Source of the DNA: Epiperipatus broadwayi
Taxonomy: Eukaryota; Animalia; Onychophora
NCBI GenBank assembly: GCA_028023455.1
Contig: JAQFVV010000006.1
Coordinates: forward strand, 14,756,001-14,820,000
Direction: 5' to 3'
DNA length: 64,000 nucleotides
Below the pieces are notes generated by a model. It ran no database searches, had not been told where the DNA came from, and saw nothing but the letters and a program-made list of their open reading frames with translations. A program made the position numbers and the translations under genes. Positions 1,322 through 64,000 of the stretch are shown here, piece after piece. Position 1 is the first letter of the stretch, and every line of letters starts with the position of its first letter.

Positions 1322-1364
1322 ACCTCTGACCATGGTTTCGTGCTCTGGCACTCCTCAGAGAGGT
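1322..1364 (-). ncRNA. Type I hammerhead ribozyme, family B, fully canonical
   Basis: Minus strand reads ACCUCU-CUGAGGA-GUGC CAGA GCAC-GAAAC CAUG GUC-AGAGGU. Stem I is 6 bp and stem II 4 bp, both perfect. Stem III is the palindrome ACCAUGGU. Predicted cleavage after GUC (1328/1327). Confidence 0.92.
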
Positions 1365-4384: not shown

Positions 4385-4520
4385 CACAAGCAAAACTCTT
4401 CCTACAGTAGTGCCACTTAGTGCAAGCCAGAGTAATCAATGGATGCATAAATCTTCTTGCATCCATTGATTACTCTGGCTTGCACTGTGTGGCGCTACTA
4501 CATGTAGAGATTTGCATGTG
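4385..4520. repeat. Ribozyme-less hairpin made from the family A 3' segment
   Basis: Arms 4407-4447 and 4458-4498 are nearly perfect complements (GCAAGCCAGAGTAATCAATGGATGCA). Other partial family A pieces lie at 10-100(-), 14449-14575(+) and 17491-17571(-). Confidence 0.8.
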
Positions 4521-5908: not shown

Positions 5909-6129
5909 GTTAGTTGTCATTATTTAATAATTTTTTAATATACTTATTCCTGTTGTTATTTACAGTATGCAATTACATTTTTAATAATAATAATAATAAT
6001 GTTTATTAAAATAAATACATTCATTGTATTCATTCATTTAAATACAGGTCAAAAATACAAATGTTATTCTTCTATTAATCCCTAGTTGCGCTTTTACGTA
6101 GAATTTTTTTATAACAATTTAGTTATTTA

Positions 6130-6768
6130 ACAGGCAAAAACTCTCCATATAGTAGTGTCACCTTGTGCTAACCAGACTAATCAATGGATTCCAGAAGGCT
6201 TGTGCATAAAATCCCTATCTAGTGCCTACTCATCCAATATTCCCAGACTAGTTTCTGGCTTGTGGTCTTTGTCAGTGAGGAGCCTAGGATCTGAGAGCAC
6301 TGCACCTAGATTTTAGGATCTAATGCAACCCTCCAGCAGCCACCTTTTATCTCTACTTAACTACAAAACTATGAGAATGAAATTGAAAACACAATAATAT
6401 TTTCAATCTAAGCTCAATAGCTTATGTAGTCATATGGGTCTGAATTTCAATTCAGAACCCATATATTTTGGTGACTTTGGCTCTTTAATAACCATAGCCA
6501 CTATTATCCTATTAGGCAGGATTGGTGTTAAACCACTAAACATCACATGATCACCATCTCATGCTAGCACATGATGAAGGCCACAAGCCAGAAACTAGTC
6601 TGGGAATATTGGATGAGTAGGCACTAGATAGGGATTTTATGCACAAGCTTTCTGGCATCCATTGATTACTCTGGTTAGCACAACGTGGCACTACCATATG
6701 GAGAGTTTTTGCCTGTTTAATAACAGTTATGTGCTAGCATGAGATGGTGATTATGTGATGTTTAGTAT
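6130..6768. mobile_element. Family A HHR retroelement, tail-to-tail fold-back insertion
   Basis: Minus arm with HHR 6241-6281 (CUGACAA, damaged) and plus arm with HHR 6568-6606 (AUGAUGA, 5' strand of stem I lost). 12-bp TSD TTTAGTTATTTA at 6118-6129 and 6769-6780. Confidence 0.85.
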
Positions 6769-6943
6769 TTTAGTTATTTACGTGAAATTTTAAATATCAT
6801 ACAAAATATGTTAATAATAATAGCAACAATAAATTACATTTCAATAATATATTAATTATATAATAAAAATGTAGGGAATTTTATGCAAACATCGCTACTA
6901 GGTTGCACAACATAAATACCTATGTAAGTATACTATACAGAGG

Positions 6944-18435: not shown

Positions 18436-18814
18436 AAACTACTAAATTATTTAAATATAAAACCATAAGTGCACATTGATTATCAGGTAAATTACATCAT
18501 TATTTCCTTTTGTTTAATATTAACCAATAGAATATTAGCAATCCGTTGTCAAGGCAACGTATAATTGCAAAATAATAAAATAATCAGTAATAAGATATTT
18601 ATTATCACATTTCTTACTTTATTCAAATTTATTTATTACCTTTATTTGCAATTCATTTTTCTACTTAAATCTGTTGTGAGTTGGAAAACAGAGATGAAAA
18701 AATTATTTCTTTAATAGAGCAATGTTGCTTCCTTTTGCTAAAAATTTGATATCCTGACTTTCCCAATGTTTGTAGAAACAGTATATTGTGATGATAACAA
18801 CAATAACGATATGT

Positions 18815-19085
18815 TAAAACAGGCAAAACTTACTATATATATTTTACCACACACAGCAAGCTAGAGTAATCAATGGATGCCAGAAGGCTTGTGCATAAAA
18901 TCCCCATCTAATGCCTACTCATCCAATATCCCCAGACTAGTTTCTGGCTTATGGCCTTCATCAGTGAGGAGCCTTGGATCTGAGAGCACTGCATTTAGAT
19001 CTTAGGATCTATATATATATAGTGAGTTTTGCCTGTTTTAACAACAGTTATATACAAGCATAAGAAGAGATGGTCATGTGATGTT
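18815..19085. mobile_element. Family A HHR retroelement, short fold-back insertion
   Basis: Minus arm with an intact HHR, flipping to plus after 19011. TSD AATAAC/TGATATGT at 18802-18814 and 19086-19098 (1 mismatch). Confidence 0.85.
18929..18970 (-). ncRNA. Type I hammerhead ribozyme, family A, intact
   Basis: UCCUCA-CUGAUGA-A GGC CAUAA GCC A-GAAAC UA GUC-UGGGGA. Stem I is 6 bp with one G-U. Stem III is the palindrome ACUAGU. Predicted cleavage at 18935/18934. Confidence 0.88.
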
Positions 19086-19401
19086 AATAATGATATGTCA
19101 GACAATAAAATACCATGAGCAGTTGTAAGAACTTTAAAATGTGACATTTCATACGCATGCTCACTAACTAATTACTTCATGTAATAGTTATAGAAAAATT
19201 AAAACAGAATTTAGTTTAATGGGATTTAAAAATATTATATTAAAGCCTTATATCTCTTAAAGTAACATGGCGAGAAATTTGATCATCAAAATATAAAATA
19301 AATTGTCAGATTGAAGCCATAAATGCTTTAACAATTAATTTTGGGAATCAAAAAATAATTTTTTATATACTAATGTGTAATTTTGTATATAATAAACAAA
19401 T

Positions 19402-23540: not shown

Positions 23541-23814
23541 CCATTTTAGTTCTTTTTAACTCTTTGATCCATTTACTCGATATATAGTTTTTTTTTATTT
23601 ACTCGCCAGTATTATCATGAAGACATTTTATTTATTTGCTTTAAATGACTTCACTACATGTTTCATATATTGTATTTAAAATAAGTAAATAAAATTTCTT
23701 CTTATTTATATCTAAGATCAGTCTTTGTGAAAAAATCAGTTAATAAGATATCACATATGTTTTCAGAAGCAATGTTATCTACTGTAAATTTGAGTAATCT
23801 CTAAATACAGTAAT

Positions 23815-24521
23815 CATCACATGATCACATTTCCTATACTAGCACATTAATTGTTGATAAGCAGAGCAAAACTCTCCATACAGTATTGCCACCTGTGCTA
23901 AACAGAGTAATCAATGGATGCCAGAAGGCTTGTGCATAAAATTCCTATCTAATGCCTACTCATCCAATATCCCCAGACTAGTTTCTGGCTTGTGGCCTTC
24001 GTCAGTGAGGAGCTTTGGATCTGAGAGCACTGCATCTAGATCTGTATGGAGAGTTTTGCTCTGTTTATCAACAGTTAATGTGCTAGTATAGGAAATGTGA
24101 TCATGTGATGCTTAATGGTTTAACACCAATCCTGCCTAATAGGATATTGGTGGCTATGGTTGTAAAAGAGCCAAAGACACCTAAATGTATGGGTGCTGAA
24201 CTGAGTTCAGACCCATATGACTATTTAAGCTATTGAGCTTAGATTGAAAATATTTTTTGTGTTTTCAATTTCATTCTCATAGTTTTGTAGTTAAGTAGAG
24301 ATAAAAAGTGGTTGCTAGAAGGTTGCATTAGATCCTAAGATCTAGATGCAGTGCTCTCAAATCCAAAGCTCATCACTGTCGAAGGCCACAAGCCAGAAAC
24401 TAGTCTGGGGATATTGGATGAGTAGGCATTAGATAGGGATTTTATGCACAAGCCTTCTGGCATCCAATGATTACTCTGTTTAGCACAGGTGGCAATACTG
24501 TATGGAGAGTTTTGCTCTGTT
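23815..24521. mobile_element. Family A HHR retroelement, best-preserved copy (inverted arm plus full 456-nt monomer)
   Basis: Minus arm 23815-24043 (intact HHR) and plus arm 24043-24521 (HHR 24370-24411, CUGUCGA). 13-bp TSD TAAATACAGTAAT at 23802-23814 and 24522-24534. Confidence 0.9.
23970..24011 (-). ncRNA. Type I hammerhead ribozyme, family A, intact
   Basis: UCCUCA-CUGACGA-A GGC CACAA GCC A-GAAAC UA GUC-UGGGGA. Only the freely variable N7 differs from the family consensus. Confidence 0.88.
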
Positions 24522-25284
24522 TAAATACAGTAATGTTATTATAGTCAAATCATTGACTATTTCCTATATATGAGCTGCATTAGATTCAAAATCCTCCCTG
24601 ACAAAGACCATAATAAAAGATATTATCTGGTTTCCATTGACAACTCAAGCTTAGAATAGAATTATTCTTAAATTCTAATCTACTATATATGTTAGGGTCC
24701 TATTTTCAACACAGTGCAATCATTAGTCGTATTCTTTATTTACAATTCAAGTACCATAATTAATTAATTAATTAACTGCAGATATAATGACTTATCACAG
24801 TATAGATGTTGCAACTTTTAATTTATTCATTAATTAATAAATTAATTTATTTCACGCTAATAGAAATTGTGAGTCTTAAAAATAATTTGAAAGCGTAAAC
24901 ATTCCTAATTTTATTTTATAGCTTTTATAAACAATAAAACAGGATGTATCATTCTTGACAATAAAATTAAAAAAAATTCTGGCAAACAGAAATATAACTA
25001 CAAAAAGGAAAGATGTTTAAAGAATTGGTCATTAACCAATAATAATCAATTTCTGTAAATGATTTTTATAACATACCTCATCTAATTAACTATTCATTAT
25101 ACGCAAATCAATAAAAAAAGTATCTAACTATAAAATAATAATAGAATATTTATGAACTGTAAGGAAGTAATAGTTAGAATAACTTGATATTTGATAAAAT
25201 TACCAAATTATTTTTATAGCCACGTAAACTGTTTTAATTGCAGTAAAGCAACTGTCCATAATATATATACTACAAAGAAATCAA

Positions 25285-25985: not shown

Positions 25986-26369
25986 ATATACCTTTGTTAA
26001 TATTTTATTAGACTGATGAGATATGGCACTTAAGTTATTAAACTCATAGTCAATTGTCGATTATAATGTTCTCTGTATATATTTCAAAGAATAATGTTTT
26101 CAGCTAATTTTTAACTTGGCTAACTTTTTTGAGATCTTTGAAATATGCATGTCGAACTTTATCAGTTATATAATTTATTCTATAAAAATCTGAAACTTAT
26201 ATGAATCAGCAATTACCAATAATTGTATATATCATTTAATAGTTTACGTTATAATAAGCTCAGTACGACATTGTCAGTTTATGTACTGATTTAATGAAAC
26301 AATTATTAAAATAGAAGAAGAAACAAGAATGAATCAGGATTGGAAGAATAGTTTGGAAATTAGTAGTAA

Positions 26370-27043
26370 AGCAGTAGCAACTCTCTGTTTACAGTAGTGC
26401 CACCCATTGCAAGCCACAGTAATCAATGGATGCTAGAAGGTTTGTGCATCAAAATCCCTATCTAATGCCTACTCATCCAATATCCCCAGGCTAGTTTCTA
26501 GCTTGTGGCCTTTATCAGTGTGGAGCCTTGCATCTGGCAACACTGCACCAATGCAATCCTTCAACAGTCCCCTTTTACCTTTTTAATTAACTATAAAGCG
26601 ATGAGTTTAAATTCAAAACAAACAATGTTTTCAATCCAAGCTAATTAGCTTGTATGATCATATAGATCTGAACCCACTTGTTTATCTATACATTTTGTTG
26701 TCCTTAATTTTTTTATTAACCATTCATCACCATCATCCTTTGGCCAAGATTGGTATGCATCACTAACGTCACATATCCACCCTTTCCTATGCTTACACAA
26801 TCTGTTTAAACAGTAACAACTCTTCATACGGTAGTGCCATCCAGTGCAAGCCTTAATAACCAATGGAACCCAGAAGATTTGTGCATTTAAATATCTATAT
26901 TGCTAATCCAATCACCAGACTAGTTTCTAGCTTGTGGTCTTTATTAGTGAGGAGACTTGGATTCGAGAGCACTATATCTGGATTTTCGGATCTAGCCAAG
27001 CCTTGTATAAGCATAAGGAATGTTGGTTATGTGATGTTTTAAC
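26370..27043 (-). mobile_element. Family A HHR retroelement, decayed tandem dimer with short inverted end
   Basis: Two damaged HHRs at 26483-26524 and 26912-26953, about 430 nt apart. TSD AAATTAG/ATAGTAA at 26357-26369 and 27044-27056. Confidence 0.8.
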
Positions 27044-27598
27044 AAATTAATAGTAAGAACTAGCTGCATTTATTGTGATATATAATGGTTTCAAGAAGAG
27101 AAAATATTTTCTCATGCCGCACTTATTAATTAAGAGCTTGTTTGAGCTATTGGTACGCTCTCTGTATTGCATTTTTGTAATTATAATGCCACGTTATATA
27201 TGACTTGCTTTTTTAATTATTATAAAATAGTGCTCATCATTATTATATTTTGCATATATTTATTTTAAATATTTGTCATATTTATGTCTGTATGTGTCTA
27301 CTTTATGCAATAGTTATTGTATTAATCTGCCATGAACATAACATGAGAAACAATTTGAGAATTGTTTTTAAGTAGCCGGTGAATATCTAACCAAATTAAT
27401 ATTCAGTTGATCTTAATGAGGAAGGAAAACCATAAAAATCCTTACCATGTCTCGATTGGTGTGGTAAGTAATCTTTTCTCTGTCAGTATTTTTCAACTCT
27501 GGTGGAAAAGTACTGCAAGGCCCTCGCAGTGCAATGGGCCCTTTATATGTACTGATTTTGACAATTCATATTCTCTATGCATTAATTTTTATTTTTAG

Positions 27599-27659: not shown

Positions 27660-27779
27660 GTAATTTTTTTTTTGTATTCATTATCTCTTGCCATCTCTTT
27701 TTTTTTTATTATCAGAAGATATTGATTTAATGTTAATATCAGGTTTTCTAAAGTGTTTATACTTCAAGGTAAGATATTA

Positions 27780-28182
27780 AAACAGACAATACTCTCTTTA
27801 CGTATTGCCACTCAGTGCAATGGATGCCAGAAGACTTGTGCATAAAATCCCCATCTAGTGCCTACTCATCCAATATCTCCAGACTAGTTTCTGGCTTGTG
27901 ACCTTCATCAGTGAGGAGCCTTGGATCTGAGAGCACTGCAGGTAGATCTTAGGATCTAATGCAACCCTCTAGCAGCCACCTTTTATCTCTACTTACCTAC
28001 AAAACTATGAGACAAATTGGAAACACAATAATATTTCCAATCCAAGCTCATCGGCTTATATAGTCATATAGGTCCGAACTCAGTTCAGTACCCTTACATT
28101 TTGGTGTCTTTGGTTCTTTAATAACCATAGCAGCTAAGAGAAAGCATAAGAAATAGTGATCATGTGATGTTTATTGGCCTAA
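27780..28182 (-). mobile_element. Family A HHR retroelement with short inverted end
   Basis: HHR at 27876-27917. 14-bp TSD AAGGTAAGATATTA at 27766-27779 and 28183-28196. Confidence 0.88.
27876..27917 (-). ncRNA. Type I hammerhead ribozyme, family A, core intact
   Basis: UCCUCA-CUGAUGA-A GGU CACAA GCC A-GAAAC UA GUC-UGGAGA. One stem I mismatch and a U-G pair in stem II. Confidence 0.8.
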
Positions 28183-28269
28183 AAGGTAAGATATTATTGC
28201 AAAATTTTCCTCAGATAATTATTATAGTTTATAATTCAGAATTTGATTACAATATATAATTTGACATTT

Positions 28270-52193: not shown

Positions 52194-52346
52194 AAAATAC
52201 TATATTGGCAATCGTGTATCTTTTTCGCATGTGTGTGCCCATGTGTATCGGTTGCTCAAGATGGATTGGAGGATGAATAGACTGAAAAATGCTGAGTTCA
52301 AATCCCTCTATTTGCATATATAAGAAACATTCAGTATAAGTAAATT

Positions 52347-52507
52347 AAACCACATCACATGATCACTATCTCATACTAGCACATAATTGTTATTAAACTA
52401 TTCAAAACAAAGCAAAACTCTCCATATAGTTGTGCATCCATTGATTGCTCTTGTTAGCGCAAGATGGCACTACTATATGGAGAGTTTTGCTTTGTTTTGA
52501 ATAGTTT
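52347..52507. mobile_element. Ribozyme-less miniature fold-back derivative of family A
   Basis: Both family A termini joined as a hairpin. 12-bp TSD TATAAGTAAATT at 52335-52346 and 52508-52519. Confidence 0.8.
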
Positions 52508-53500
52508 TATAAGTAAATTACATACTGCCTTAGAATTACAAAATCTGTTTAATACCTTCTTCATTTTTAAAATAGTAATCTGATTAAATATGATAGATTA
52601 ATTCTTTAACATGTTCTAATTCAACTTTTAAACAAATATAGTCCAACCCAAATATAAAATATGGCATTTATATTTGTTTTATTAGGAAAAAAACTAACAA
52701 TTTATATTCTACATAATAGGCTGCTATAATAAATTGGTTTATCAAAAGATTATCTCTTATATAATCCTTTTGTTGCTACTTACAATGAAAATCATACATT
52801 TAGGTATTAATCCACTTCAGACCCCACGGTATAGAACAAATTGTCATGTAAATCAACAATTTAAATAGGAAAAATATAATATATAATCAAAAAATGTAAA
52901 ACTATATATAAAATTAATTGCAGTATAAAATAAAAATGTAAATGAACTTACCCTCATAAAAATCCACAGACTTTTGATTTAGTCATACATATTCAGAGCT
53001 TATGCTTTCTTGCTTAGAAATTATTCTGATATTGATCTATGTTCTATCTCTATTTTCAACCTCAGTGAAAATTGAAATGATTTTCTATCAACAAAATGAA
53101 ATTGTTGTAATAAAACTCGCTCTACTTCTTTGCTTGAAAGTTTTTTTGACAGTGTGTTGCACGTTAACCAATGATATTTGTTGTAGTATTTTAAACATTT
53201 TTACAGCTTGTTTTTTTTTTAATTTTTTCTTGATACTACGCTCTAATTCTGCTGTCTGCATCATCATGTAAATTAAAAATCAATTGCCTAAAAGGAAAAC
53301 AATTGCTAATAAAAAAATCGCTTTTGCTTTATTGCTTATAACTTTATTTATTTATTTGTTTATTTTTGATAGCATTATTCAGCATTCTCTGTTTTTCAGA
53401 AAAGACCGGAAACATCTTGTATATACCTTTCCTCTACTTACGAATAATATTTATTGTAGTATTTTTATTCATTGATAGTTCTATATATATATATTTTTAA

Positions 53501-57016: not shown

Positions 57017-58894
57017 GGATTTTACATCTTTTTAACATGTTTGGTAATATGTTTATAATTACACACTCTTCCACAAGATGTTAAGGTGGCTAGAAACTAG
57101 TTCCCACCTTGTGATAGAGTTGGGTAGTGAAAATTACACTACAGAAATATTAATCTGGGAATGTTTGCACAATAGCAATAAGCTCACACTAGATGGCTCT
57201 GAAATAGAACGATGGATTTCTGCTCCTAATGCAGATGTTAAAAGTAAGAAGAGTGTGTTTTTTGATGTTTACAATAGGTTGTTTTGCAATAATATAAATA
57301 AAATGAATTATTGTTCCTAAAGCATGAAATTTACGTTTAAACTTTGGAATTAAAACAAGATGTAAATTTGTCATTTGGATGAGGCGGTAATTATGATAAA
57401 AAAATCTTGAGAAAAACTCATAATTATTTTTTTTAAGTAATTTCAAAAGTTTAATTTATCTTCTTTATTCACTAAAAAGGAGTTTTATTTTTAAGGTTTC
57501 TTAAATTCTCATGTTTAACATAAATTAGGAAATACATTTTCATATTAATGCTTATTTAAATATCTCTAAAATAGTATTATGTTTTACATTGATTTCCTCT
57601 CACGATAACCAACTCTGGTTGATCTCTTACATTTTTATTGCAGTACAATAAAGAACCCAAAAACTTTTTAAAATGGAAAATGTTGGTTTAAAAAAATATA
57701 TAATTAAATCAAAACCTATCCTTGCTGCATCTAGATTTTTACATTTTTTAAAGTAGCAACCAAGAGGTTTTTCTGTTTTAAATATTGTGTATTTTAATGT
57801 AGAACAATATATCTTTTCAAAATAAAGTATAAACTAAATGAAAAATGAATTTTTTCATCTGATTGCCAATATCTTTTGTAGATAGCAGACTTCATATTTC
57901 GTAGTGGTGAAAGACCACATCAGCTGTATTTAGCAAAGCCAATTTTTACAGTTTATTTTTTCTGATTATATTTAGCGTTTTGCAATGGTGCAAAATGGTA
58001 AGATTGTGTATTGTATTATTTACAATAGTAGAATATATAAAAGTGAAGGATGCTTTTGATCAGAACAAATGAACATTTGAAAATTATCACCGGAAGGTTT
58101 AATGCCAAAATTGATAATTGATTGAAAGATGAAAGTGCTGGGAGTAAATTTGGTTATTGTGATACAAATGAAAACAACATATACTTGAGGAGTTGCAGAA
58201 AAAAAAAATGACAACCGCATGTTATGGAATCTTTCTTTGAGAAAAATGCTAAATGAAAATAGACATGGAAACATCTAAATGAATGTCCAGCAGGGTTGGA
58301 ATATATTTTGACCAACAAATAGTATCTATTTAAAGGTGGTAATATATTTAATAAGTTCCACACAGAAAGTGTCAGTGGATGGAAGCTACATATTAATTCA
58401 AAACTAGAGAGACATAAAGTATTAAGAAAGTCGGTATTAACAATTGATATGTCTAATCTTTGGAAAACACTTCATTGAATTTAAATTAGAACTTGCAAAT
58501 CATTTTAAAATATTAACAGATTTTGAAAGTGACTCAGACTTGAATGAAATCAATAAGAAGATAAGTGATACTCCATTAAGAATTGCAGCAAAGATAGTTA
58601 ATACAAAAAAAGCAATAACCAACCAATAAAATTTCTACTGAAACAAAATAATGTATGAAGAAAAGAAGGAATATGGAAAATTATTATAGTCCATTAATAA
58701 AAATAGAATACCAAGAGATTTGTAGAATAGTATGAAAAAGTGTTAATAATGATATAAGAAATATAATCATACATGTCAGAGAAAGTTATAGAAGAGAATA
58801 AGCCTTCAAAGTAACAGGCAACACCCTAGCTTTGCAAGAAAAATTATTTCAGAAATAAGAAGAAAAAATTAACTATTATTAAAAAGAGGAATAA

Positions 58895-59223
58895 TAAACC
58901 ACTAAACATCACATGATCACCTTTTCTGTATGCTTACACAAGCTGTTAAAATATTAGCAAATTCCAAACAATAGTGCCACCTAATGCAATCCATAGTAAT
59001 TAATGGATGCAAGAAGATTTTTGCATAAAATCCCATCTAGTGACTATTCATCCAATATCCCATATCCAAGGCTCCTCATTGATGAAAGCCACAAGCTTGA
59101 AACTAGTCTGGGGATATTAGATGAGTAAGCACTAGATGGGATTTTATGCACAAATCTTCATGCATCCATTGAGTACTATGGCTTGCACTAAGTAGCACTA
59201 CTGTTTAGAGAATTTGCTACTGC
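58895..59223. mobile_element. Family A fold-back copy nested in an RTE LINE
   Basis: Minus arm 58895-59062 and plus arm with HHR 59073-59114. Interrupts the RTE ORF relic between the endonuclease and RT regions. Confidence 0.82.
59073..59114 (+). ncRNA. Hammerhead ribozyme, family A, C3U variant
   Basis: UCCUCA-UUGAUGA-AAGC CACAA GCUU-GAAAC UA GUC-UGGGGA. Stem II is 4 bp; the core has C3 to U. Confidence 0.72.
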
Positions 59224-60971
59224 TAAAAAGAAGGATAACATCAGTAAATGTGCGGAAGACTTTTATAAGAATTATAATAAAGAGCAAGAAAACAAAGTGT
59301 CCTCTATAATTACTATGTCCATTGAATTTTCAAGTATTTTAAATGAAGAGGTAGATGCAATTAAATCTATGAAGAAGGGAAAAGTTCCAGGTAATGATGG
59401 AATTATAATTGATATCTTAAAAGAAGCATGTGAAGAAATTAATTTTTTTTTTGGTTAAACTGTATATAAAATGTCTAAATGGTAAAGTTGTGCTAAATTA
59501 TTGAAAGAACGGAGTAGTAGCACTGATAAATTTAAGAAAAGTCATAATGAAGATAGTAGAAATTGTAAACCTATTTGTTTTATACAAAATCTGCATGATG
59601 ATAATTACAACTGGTCTGCAATAAACTTTGGATTCTAATCAATTTAAAGAAAAGTTAGAGAAAAAACTAATGAATATGAATTGCCATTATGGGTAGATTA
59701 TGAAAAGGCATTATATAAGCATTTCTTCAGAGATTAAAGCATTGGATCATCAAGATCACAGGATGTTGTCATATTCTGAAGAATAGTTATCAAAATGCAA
59801 CAGCAATGATTAGATTATGTAATACTATTAACAAGATCAACATTGAGAAAAATATGTCACAGAATGATTCCATATCTCCAAATCTTTTTACAGCAGTTTT
59901 ACAAGAAGTATCTTATGGATTAAAATGGGACACTCGGGAAATAAAAGTAAAGGGAGATTATTTAAGTCATTTATATTTTGCAGATGGTATAATTGTTTTT
60001 GCAAATAATGCTTCATAACTTTGGGAAATGTTGCAGGAGTTATCAGATGAAAGTAAGAAAATGGGACTAAAGGTAAATGCAAAAAAAACTAAAACGATGT
60101 TCAATGGATTTTTTCAAAAGCAAAAAAAAAATAAAGATTAGTAATTATAAATTGAAAGAAGTTAACAACTACAAGTAGCTTAGTCAGATTATTAGTATAG
60201 ATATGGAATATATAGATAAAATTAATCATACCATTAATATTGGATGGAATGGTTTTGATAGAAATAATATATTATTAAAAGGAAATATGCCTGTGTGTTT
60301 GAAAAATAATGTTTTTACTATATGTGGTTTGCCAATTCTTACCTATGGATTTAAAATTTGGACACTTAACAAAAGAGTAATGCATGGACTTCATACCATT
60401 TAAGGAAGCTTGGGGAGATGTAGTATATTAGGAATAATAAGAGATCAAAAATGAACTACATGAATGAGAGAACATATAGATATCACGACATCATTGAAAG
60501 AATATGAGAGATTGAAATGAATCGGAGTTGCTCATATTGCTAAAAGAGAAGGTAATAGATGAAGTGCAAAGACATGACCGATGTCACTAGAGGTTCATGA
60601 TAACTGGGCAAAGTATTAATCTAAGTTACTGAAGTCTGTAATATAAATAGATGTTCAATGCTTTTTCATTTATTCTATATTGCTTATATTCAGTGAATCT
60701 TTAAAAATATCACTTCTTTACCACATTTTACAATTGTATTTTAGATATCTGAAGAAAACTGCTAAACAGTCGAAACTATCGGATAATAAAAAGTATTATG
60801 AAAAATGCAGACAAGGGTGTGCTTTTTTAAAGAGATTTATTTAATTAATGTAAAAACTAGTTAAAAAATAAAATGAATAAAGAGCACAAGAAACTGAAAA
60901 GAAAAAAACAATATCTAATCTTCAATAAATCAGTATATTCTATAAGCAATAGAAAATAATATTCATTAATA

Positions 60972-61820
60972 CAGTAGCAACTTAATCTATACGATATTGC
61001 CACTTAGTGCAAGCTATAGTAATTAATGCATGCTAGAAGATTAATGCATCAAAATCCCTATCTACTGCATATTCATCCAATATCTCCAGACTAGTTTATG
61101 GCTTTCATTAATGGTGAACATTGGATTTGAGAGCACTGGAACTAATGTGTTTCTCTAGTAGCCGCTTTTTACCTTTTTAATTTACTATAAACCTATGAGC
61201 TCAAATTGGAAACAAGGTTTTCAATCCAAGTTAGTTCATTTGTACATTCATACAGATCTAAACCCAGTTCAGTACCTATACATTTTGGTGCTTTTGGCTT
61301 TTTAATAATCAACGTTCTTTGGCTAGGATTGGCACTAACCCATTATAATATCACACGATCACCATTTTTTACATTTACATACATAATACCAACTTTCTTC
61401 ATATAATACTGTCACCTAGTAGAAGGTATAGCAATCGGTGAACACTAGATGATTAGATCTGCATGACTTAACAAACAAATTAGCTTGGATTGAAAACATT
61501 ATTGTGTTTTCAGTTGGGACTCATAGCTTTATAGTTAACCAAAAAGGTAAAATGTGGCTAATGGAGGGATGCATTCGATTCAAAGATCTAGATGCAGTAC
61601 TCTCAGATCCAAGGCTTCACACTAATGAAAGCCATAAGCTAGAAATTAGTCTTGAGATATTGGATGAGTAAGTACTGGATAGGGACTTTAATACACAAAC
61701 TTTCGAGCATTTATTGATTACTATGGTTTGCAATAGATGGCACAATTGTATGGAGAAAGTTGATACAGTTTTAACAAATTGTGTTAAGAAATGGTGATCA
61801 TGTGATGTTATAGTGGTTTA
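60972..61820. mobile_element. Family A large decayed fold-back copy
   Basis: Minus arm about 60972-61420 and plus arm about 61460-61820 with HHR 61616-61657 (CUAAUGA, damaged). Confidence 0.8.
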
Positions 61821-64000
61821 ATACTATTCGTCGTTCGTGGTTTGCACATATTATTTGAAGATTAGTTTTTTTAAGTATGAATGTTGTCAATAGTCTCAAT
61901 TGAGTAGGAAAAAACTATAAATTTAACGAATTAGAATTATTTTTTATTACTATTTTATTCATTCGATGACTAACCTTTATTAGTAAAATAAGGCAATATA
62001 TATACTTCTGAAGGCAACCAAATTGATTTTGAATTTCAAATTATTATAGATTAGCAATAATGTCTTTTTTCTTATTTAATTATATGTTTTATCATTTATA
62101 TATACGGTGTAAATACAATTTTGTCTATGAACATTTTTGTAAAGAATTTATTTAATAAACATTACATTAAAAGTAAACAATAACTGAATAATATTTATTA
62201 ATATCTCTTTGAAAGATACACTTCTAATTATTATTTTGACATTTAAGTATTTTTTAACCATTAAATTTTAATAAAAGAAACTTAATAAAATTTGTATCTT
62301 TTTACATTATTTAATAGATGTAGAAACATTCTTTTTATATTCTTACTTTAATCTTTGGGAATTTTGCGGATTTTTATCAAATATACCATTTCGAAATTAT
62401 TCAAATTGTCAAAAATATTAGAATTCATAGTGTTTTTGAGTCTACAAAAATGTTATTTAAGTGACACCCAGGGCATTTGTTTTTGTCTGCGGTGAACAAT
62501 TTATCAACATTTCAATCATATTTTAGATTATTATTATTTTTCCAAAAATAAACTTTATGTACACTATAATTTTTCAAAAAGATGTTATAATACATTCATG
62601 AATAATTTTATAAATAAGACATCAAAGTGATTGCTTTTAATTACTGAAAAATACAAATGTATTATTCATTTAATTTTAGTTTGCAGTATATATTTTATTA
62701 AATTAATGGTAATAGTGGCCCTTTTTTATTTACCGTATTTAGAATAATTTGTTTAAAAGACAACGGTAACATGGGCTAAGTAAGCACTTTCAGGAGTTTA
62801 GCATTTCCCCCATTTGTAGTCTAAGACACATCATATTACAATTGCCGTTTTCATTTGTACAGTCAGTGCTCTATATTGGTCTAATGAATCCATATTAACT
62901 TGGGATCTTCATTTGCCTGTTAATAATAACTAGATATCATTTACTTCTCACTCCGAGATGCTTGCAGGGTGACTAGCTGAAAGATAAATCCTGTGTTTGT
63001 GACCTAAAAAAATTTTCTAAGCTTGCCCAGTTAAGATTTGAGGTACTTACACATTTTTTTGGTATTGATGAAAATTACCTGCTCCTAACAAATGTGTATA
63101 TAATGATAGAATTAAACATATTTACAATTCTAAAAAGGAAAGGAATTTATTTTGGAAGTGAATATTAGATAATATTCTAATGAGGAGAAAGTAATTAGTC
63201 AAAATGTTGTTTTTGCTTATTTTACAATTTAAATTATGATGTGATGTCATGAAAGAATGCTGACATAAGTAATCAATCATCTGGAAAAAGTAACGTGTAC
63301 TTGGGATATACTGTCCATCTTTAATTCTTGCTTATTGATCCTGTGTAGTATTTTTTCCCAAAGAAAATGATTAAAATTTAGCACTTTTATGTCCACAGTT
63401 TGGACAAACAATGGTGCTGTTTTGTTCAGTATTGTCAAAAGAGAGTAGCCATTCATAACAGACACATCATTCGAAATAAGAAACTTCAGTAACCCCAATG
63501 ATATTAAGAAATAACATTTTGTAAATTAACAAAATTGTGTGGTTATATATATATTTGGTTAGTTATCACTTGTAATAAATTTATATTGTTAAAAGTTTAC
63601 TTGGAAGATCATTCTTACAAAAAAAAATGTAAATGCATTTTCTTTCATTTCCATTAAATAAAGTTATATATGGCCATTTTTCAAAATAAATCTTTATAAG
63701 TTTAGTTGGTAGAAAATAAATTTCTCACAAAAAATGTGAATGCATGTTTGTAGATGTTTGTTTCATTTCCATTAAATAAAGTTATAGGTCACCATTTTGC
63801 ACTAAATAAACTTATGAGATCATCATTTTTCCAAGTCGATCGATTAAGTTTGTCAGCAAGTCTGATGTACACATTATTTTGCTTCATTTTTAATAAAAAA
63901 AAACATAATGGTACATTTTAAAATCTCTATCTGAGATATAAATAAAATAAACCATATTTAGAGTAAATAAATTAAGTATCAAATAATATAAAGATAGATT

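Follow-up and report, generated by a model that had tools for sequence, protein, structure and literature searches.

Positions 6118 to 6780 of the window (the whole stretch of 64,000 nucleotides of Epiperipatus broadwayi DNA that was analysed) contain a single insertion, 6130–6768, with exact 12-bp direct repeats (TTTAGTTATTTA) on either side, at 6118–6129 and at 6769–6780, as identified by a scan for target-site duplications (TSDs). The insertion is built of two oppositely oriented arms of one repeat, family A, which were mapped to its 455-nt unit. The left arm (6130–6571, minus strand, 442 nt) covers unit positions 130–455 followed by 1 to ~116; its 3′ end points left, and its outer end, ...GAGTTTTTGCCTGT, lies at unit position ~116. 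The right arm (6572–6768, plus strand, 197 nt) covers unit positions 427–455 and then 1 to ~166, where it ends in ...GTGATGTTTAGTAT. The two outer ends belong to the terminus zones named here T1 (left arm) and T2 (right arm). The arms form inverted repeats, 6130–6274 and 6572–6716, of 145–153 nt (153 as the tool extended them) and 93% complementarity, beyond which the right arm continues for ~50 nt to 6768. This extra segment (6717–6768, plus strand, ~48–52 nt) lies between the T1 and T2 zones, occurs in the T2 arm only and includes palindromes (TGCTAGCA) as well as an ATCAYGTGAT-type sequence; it is referred to below as the tail. An intact hammerhead is found in neither arm: in the T1 arm the motif (~6246–6282) is decayed, with CTGACAA as its core, and the 5′ end of the T2 arm falls within the hammerhead core, C3 and the 5′ strand of helix I being absent.

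The 455-nt reference unit was taken from a 4.3-copy tandem array in another part of the genome (L031) and rotated to start directly after the GUC of the hammerhead-like motif. Read by eye, the consensus of the tandem array contains CUGAUGA, GAAA and the palindrome ACUAGU, together with a helix I of 6 bp and a helix II of 3 bp that has a mismatched A-A at the base. The motif gives no match to the Rfam hammerhead models, RF00163 included, even at E values up to 10. The hammerhead of a neighbouring repeat, family B (1322–1364, minus strand), scores 32.6 bits with Rfam Hammerhead_1 (gathering score 34; E value of 3.4e-6 in a 701-nt search). Family A is abundant, with more than 8,000 first-look candidate copies in the 5.6-Gb genome, and contains no open reading frame; comparison of the unit with Penelope ORFs by blastx returned nothing.

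Mapping of copies over 322 kb shows that 3′ ends are concentrated in the T1 and T2 zones while 5′ ends are spread along the unit. Coverage of the unit drops in steps, after T1 and then after T2, which is the profile expected from 5′ truncation. The T1 zone encompasses unit positions ~113–130 and ends in ...GAGAGTTTTTGCCTGTTT or in the subfamily variant ...GAGAGTTGCTACTGCT, the T2 zone encompasses positions ~158–176 and ends in ...GATCAYGTGATGTTTAGTGG, and TGTTTA is common to both. The earlier note on this DNA had described two fixed termini, one ~50 nt further along the unit than the other. Two staggered 3′ ends are indeed present and the measured offset is ~48 nt, but the termini are zones rather than single bases, a spread that is partly due to T/A microhomology with the target ends.

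Assembled contigs of four runs that are labelled as four organisms, and whose library type is uncertain, also contain family A in very high abundance. Most family A copies in these contigs run on through position 6572, without the inner junction of the insertion, and, in a comparison of 6698–6768 with 6185–6670, the summed depth over unit positions ~20–95 is ~100 times that over the T1–T2 region. The loose-end consensus sequences of the contigs correspond to a variant of unit positions ~75–105. The start-site region thus seems more variable between subfamilies or species than the region preceding it. A contig of one run (X12) links 6122 to 6779 and lacks the insertion, six other letters standing in its place; it has a depth of ~700 and only 21 letters on one side, and at best it is probably a paralogous empty site within an older repeat.

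Seven further insertions of the window share the architecture of 6130–6768, and all eight consist of two arms with their 3′ ends facing outward, one ending in T1 and the other in T2, as the earlier note had described. Insertion 18815–19085, in which the left end is T1 and the right end T2, lies within a 13-bp TSD with one mismatch (18802–18814 and 19086–19098). Insertion 23815–24521, in the reverse order (T2 left, T1 right), has an exact 13-bp TSD (23802–23814 and 24522–24534). Insertion 26370–27043 is composed of a minus arm of 1.4 units, ending in the T1 variant ...GAGAGTTGCTACTGCT, followed by a plus arm of only ~45 nt that was missed by BLAST and ends at T2 (27043); its 13-bp TSD has one mismatch (26357–26369 and 27044–27056). 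Insertion 27780–28182 (T1 left, T2 right) shows 12 nt of filler at its inner junction and an exact 14-bp TSD (27766–27779 and 28183–28196), and insertion 52348–52507, with short arms (T2 left, T1 right), is flanked by a 13-bp TSD (52335–52347 and 52508–52520). Insertion 58895–59224 (T2 left, T1 variant right) has a 14-bp TSD with two mismatches (58881–58894 and 59225–59238). The last one, 60972–61824 (T1 variant left, T2 right), is old, with 68–77% identity to the unit and a filler of 97 nt separating its arms, and the TSD scan recognised no duplication in its flanks. Duplications of 12–14 bp are thus present, as had been claimed, in seven of the eight insertions rather than in six. An old 122-bp family A fold-back at 4392–4513, heavily decayed and with both arms apparently stopping in the T1 region, was left out of the insertion counts.

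Insertion 58895–59224 interrupts a LINE-like ORF remnant (58233–58887 and 59222–59455). An unsplit paralogue of this remnant, L058:788–1750, contains the 14-nt target of the insertion once and therefore serves as its empty site. The remnant shows 37–56% protein identity to this paralogue, the translation of which includes a ...GSDHRLV... motif.

The same anatomy was analysed in a sample of 322 kb of the 5.6-Gb genome, about half of which was chosen by similarity to insertion 6130–6768. All 37 two-armed insertions in the sample are arranged as a minus arm followed by a plus arm, with the 3′ ends out, and none as plus then minus. Arm lengths range from ~40 nt (0.1 unit) to 4.5 units inside one duplication, so that the template can exceed one unit. 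Exact flanking repeats of at least 11 bp were found for 21 of the 37 insertions (57%), compared with 0.27% of 1480 control position pairs. These repeats measure 11 bp in one insertion, 12 bp in four, 13 bp in nine, 14 bp in three, 15 bp in three and 16 bp in one, with a mode of 13 bp. The 3′ ends and duplication lengths collected in this sample, a survey that the earlier note had proposed for the whole genome, fall into two zones and into a range of 11–16 bp, respectively, and its description of the targets as A/T-rich agrees with a GC content of 14.7% in the duplications against a background of 26.6%. Single-armed, 5′-truncated copies with the same 3′ ends exist too. If the T1 arm is placed on the left in every insertion, GTT directly follows the T2-side duplication in 6 of the 21 exact-TSD cases, which may reflect either a nick-site preference or an artefact of boundary placement.

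Inverted arms of 145–153 nt with 93% complementarity and a flanking direct repeat, as seen in insertion 6130–6768, are also what a fold-back or MITE-type DNA transposon would display, its arms being terminal inverted repeats that are cut and pasted by a transposase. The two ends of family A insertions, however, are not equivalent, one of them carrying ~48 nt more than the other. The length of the arms, which can reach 4.5 tandem units, and the inner junctions both vary freely, the single-armed truncated copies share the 3′ ends of the two-armed ones, and the duplication has no fixed length. Coding retroelements of this genome, described below, have the same anatomy. Taken together, these features make a DNA transposon an extremely unlikely origin of the insertions.

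The distribution of the tail was assessed only in insertions whose outer ends had played no role in their selection; the other loci were left out since they had been picked by an end-to-end match to the composite. Of the resulting 20 insertions, eight are those of the window, three were bystanders in other loci, three are arrays and six are long-armed copies with ends beyond the query. One T1 end and one T2 end are present in 19 of these 20, L013 being the exception. If the two sites were used equally often and independently of each other, at least 19 mixed insertions out of 20 would be obtained in about 2 of 100,000 trials. In 17 of the 19 mixed insertions, the T2 (tail-bearing) arm is at most ~50 nt longer than the T1 arm. 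This regularity, one tail per insertion, is referred to here as the one-tail rule.

The window contains LINE-like ORF remnants, and twin priming is a known route to inverted structures. A LINE (non-LTR) reverse transcriptase (RT) could thus be considered as the enzyme that mobilises family A, with the inverted arms arising by twin priming in the manner of L1. Yet family A has neither a poly(A) nor a simple-repeat 3′ tail, and the 322 kb read revealed no LINE family whose 3′ end matches the T1/T2 region. Moreover, the same two internal sites of a tandem unit terminate both arms, whereas twin priming places the end of one arm at the RNA 3′ end and that of the other at a random internal point. 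Published data (PMC11167929, PMC8557442) and the present genome alike show the one-tail rule and the stagger of ~50 nt to be specific to Penelope-like elements. Mobilisation by a LINE is therefore regarded as very improbable.

Base-by-base mapping shows that inner junctions differ between nearly all copies. In most of them the arms overlap by 1–5 nt (up to 12 nt), and others contain 1–8 nt of filler. A few junctions recur, namely 124|425 (L002 and L019), 108|438 (L018 and L025) and 89|7 (L008 and L027), and these sit exactly on the inter-arm microhomologies ACTG, TAGT and AAACT. In a tree built from the unique part of the unit (216 nt), the copies radiate in a star-like pattern and are not grouped by junction type. 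The differing junctions and the star-like tree indicate that the arms are made anew in each insertion and joined at microhomologies, which is the prediction of priming from two nicks. The earlier proposal that synthesis is primed from both target nicks is thus supported by junctions that are specific to each copy and carry microhomology or short filler.

These data also bear on whether the composite as a whole, including its inverted junction, might replicate from a fold-back master, in which case the arms would not be made per insertion. About 28 copies elsewhere in the genome align with the 639-bp composite over its full length, at 85–94% identity and with duplications of their own, and certain junction positions recur between copies. 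The similar total length of these ~28 matches is, on the other hand, a selection effect of the full-composite query, and at the nucleotide level their junctions are nearly all different. The location of the recurrent junctions on microhomologies fits repeated independent joining, and no clustering by junction is visible in the 216-nt tree. Descent of the ~28 full-length matches from one fold-back master was rejected on the grounds of the junction mapping, the microhomologies and the tree, and replication of a master composite is judged distinctly improbable.

The window itself contains no ORF with a Penelope RT and a GIY-YIG endonuclease, in agreement with the earlier note. A scan of the genome for the GIY-YIG domain (PF01541) yielded more than 10,000 candidates, some of them in intact open frames of 870–901 aa. 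When its halves were scanned against Pfam, a 901-aa ORF scored 43.9 bits with RVT_1 and 37.7 bits with GIY-YIG, both above the cut-offs; the whole ORF gave no Pfam match at an E value of 0.001. The 901-aa ORF contains YVDD and GVY...YIG motifs, its copies are 96–98% identical, and two further families are 44–47% identical to it.

The insertions of these coding Penelope elements closely parallel those of family A. They consist of a minus arm followed by plus arms, with the 3′ ends out, and their termini are staggered by ~55 nt and lie ~90–150 nt behind the hammerhead; the 3′ terminus sites are located ~+88/+145 nt behind the hammerhead cut for family P1 and ~+97/+152 nt for family P2. In both two-armed cases that could be fully resolved, a short end is paired with a long one, the duplications are ~10–13 bp long, and wherever neighbouring GIY-YIG hits of the scan lie on opposite strands (20 pairs), the order is minus then plus, 3′ ends outward. 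At several GIY-YIG loci, same-strand tandems are spaced ~3.1 kb apart. In one Penelope array, the minus arm L054:2259–3339 has its outer end ~12 nt behind the hammerhead cut, away from both of the usual sites, and the insertion still has a ~12-bp duplication.

The hammerhead of the Penelope elements is minimal and of another variant than that of family A, with a U3-A8 core (TTGAAAA...GAAACGTT) and the palindrome ACGT as stem III. Its helix II varies by family yet remains paired (GACTAT/ATAGTC, GATTGT/ACAATC and GACTGT/ACAGTT). Such U3-A8 hammerheads are found at L054:4168–4205 and L054:7303–7340, and further ones at loci L034, L036, L037, L039, L043, L047–L049, L052, L053, L055–L059 and L061.

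The earlier note had suggested looking for an RT plus GIY-YIG element that carries the hammerhead and termini of family A. Among the 28 Penelope loci read, which represent at least three ORF families, none contains the family A hammerhead, its T1/T2 zones or any other family A sequence, as searched by blastn (word size 7), fuzzy motif searches and blastx. Given that these 28 loci stand against more than 10,000 GIY-YIG candidates, the missing shared sequence would constitute weak negative evidence against mobilisation in trans.

The footprint of family A can be compared with that described for Penelope-like elements, which comprises pseudo-LTRs formed by partial tandems together with an adjacent inverted 5′-truncated copy, a tail of 30–40 bp at one end only, and a short variable duplication in A/T-rich targets (PMC8557442, PMC3846280). 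Duplications of 8–10 bp, and trans-mobilisation of unrelated sequence by pseudo-LTRs, have also been reported (PMC3846280). A purified element of Anolis nicks and extends both DNA strands, prefers A/T-rich DNA and starts reverse transcription at two adjacent internal sites of its RNA, ~85–92 nt behind the hammerhead cut, the tail being the sequence between the two start sites (PMC11167929). Animal hammerhead repeats, or ‘non-LTR retrozymes', have been proposed to be passengers of Penelope elements (PMC7229834; bioRxiv 10.64898/2026.07.22.740005).

With canonical endonuclease-positive Penelope-like elements of the Penelope/Poseidon type, such as Poseidon of Anolis carolinensis and Pen2a of Adineta vaga, family A has in common the tandem units that form pseudo-LTRs, the inverted 5′-truncated neighbour copy with its 3′ end outward, the short tail confined to one end, the A/T-rich targets with a duplication that is short and variable, a minimal hammerhead whose stem III is palindromic and, putatively, two nearby internal RT start sites ~90–120 nt behind the hammerhead cut. 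The differences are of two kinds. In dimensions, the tail of family A is ~48 nt long, compared with 30–40 nt reported for Penelope-like elements, and its duplications measure 11–16 bp (mode 13 bp), compared with 8–10 bp reported for Adineta vaga. In content, family A has no ORF, whereas a canonical Penelope encodes a single RT plus GIY-YIG ORF, and it has no detectable sequence in common with those coding Penelope families of the genome that were sampled. In the absence of an ORF, family A can belong to the Penelope group only as a non-autonomous passenger.

As a passenger, family A resembles the metazoan non-LTR retrozymes (Cervera and de la Peña 2020; Li, Clavereau and Pollet 2026, preprint), which are likewise non-coding tandem repeats of a few hundred nucleotides, reach very high copy numbers and co-exist with autonomous Penelope-like elements, their proposed helpers. 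The family A motif resembles their type I hammerhead but fails the Rfam models; retrozymes are defined by circular RNA and self-cleavage. In the literature, the link between retrozymes and Penelope is based on co-occurrence and on the similarity of pseudo-LTRs and hammerheads; in family A it is based on the insertion footprint.

Taken as a whole, the evidence makes it very likely that family A, a non-coding, very high-copy 455-nt repeat with a hammerhead-like motif, is a non-autonomous passenger of Penelope-like machinery. The Penelope-type mobilisation that the earlier note had put forward is supported by the matching footprint, and action in trans is what we infer from that footprint; the proposed helper was not found among the 28 loci read. 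Family A is accordingly a clean example of a known, Penelope-type kind rather than a new kind of element.

As regards the enzyme involved, its RNA template and the sequence of events, we infer the following scheme. A complex of Penelope RT and GIY-YIG endonuclease would nick both strands of an A/T-rich target, ~13 bp apart, and the freed 3′ ends would each prime DNA synthesis on family A RNA, which can be longer than one unit. Rather than at the RNA end, synthesis would begin in either of two internal start zones: T1, ~116–125 nt behind the putative hammerhead cut site, or T2, ~48 nt further. The two growing copies would then be fused in the middle at short microhomologies. The outcome would be two inverted arms with their 3′ ends outward, a single tail per insertion and a duplication of 11–16 bp. 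Such a scheme has parallels with L1 twin priming, in which both nicked target strands also prime, joining also occurs at microhomologies and an inverted structure also results inside one duplication. However, L1 primes at its poly(A) end and at a random internal site, whereas both primings of family A would start at defined internal sites and, unlike those of L1, almost always at two different ones.

The one-tail rule (19 of 20) and the limit on the excess length of the T2 arm (17 of 19), taken together, lead us to raise, tentatively, a more specific and rather doubtful possibility, namely that one dimeric Penelope complex bound to a single RNA start region extends both nicks, the two extensions not being independent. 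The leading enzyme would start at T1 and the trailing one at T2 of the same template, and the like-sense copies would then join at a microhomology. If true, this model would provide a concrete and testable scheme for the unsolved second half of Penelope integration. Whatever its fate, the most useful addition of the present analysis is that the quantified one-tail rule and the asymmetry of arm lengths constrain models of how Penelope integration is completed.

No class of retrotransposons is as poorly understood as the Penelope-like elements. The scars left by family A, with both strands extended, two start sites and one tail, are those that in vitro work has linked to Penelope enzymes, and they provide footprint-level support for the hypothesis that retrozymes use Penelope helpers, here in an A/T-rich, invertebrate-style genome of 5.6 Gb. 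Its many young and precisely bounded insertions constitute a good natural data set from which nick spacing, start-site choice and the rules of arm joining could be measured.
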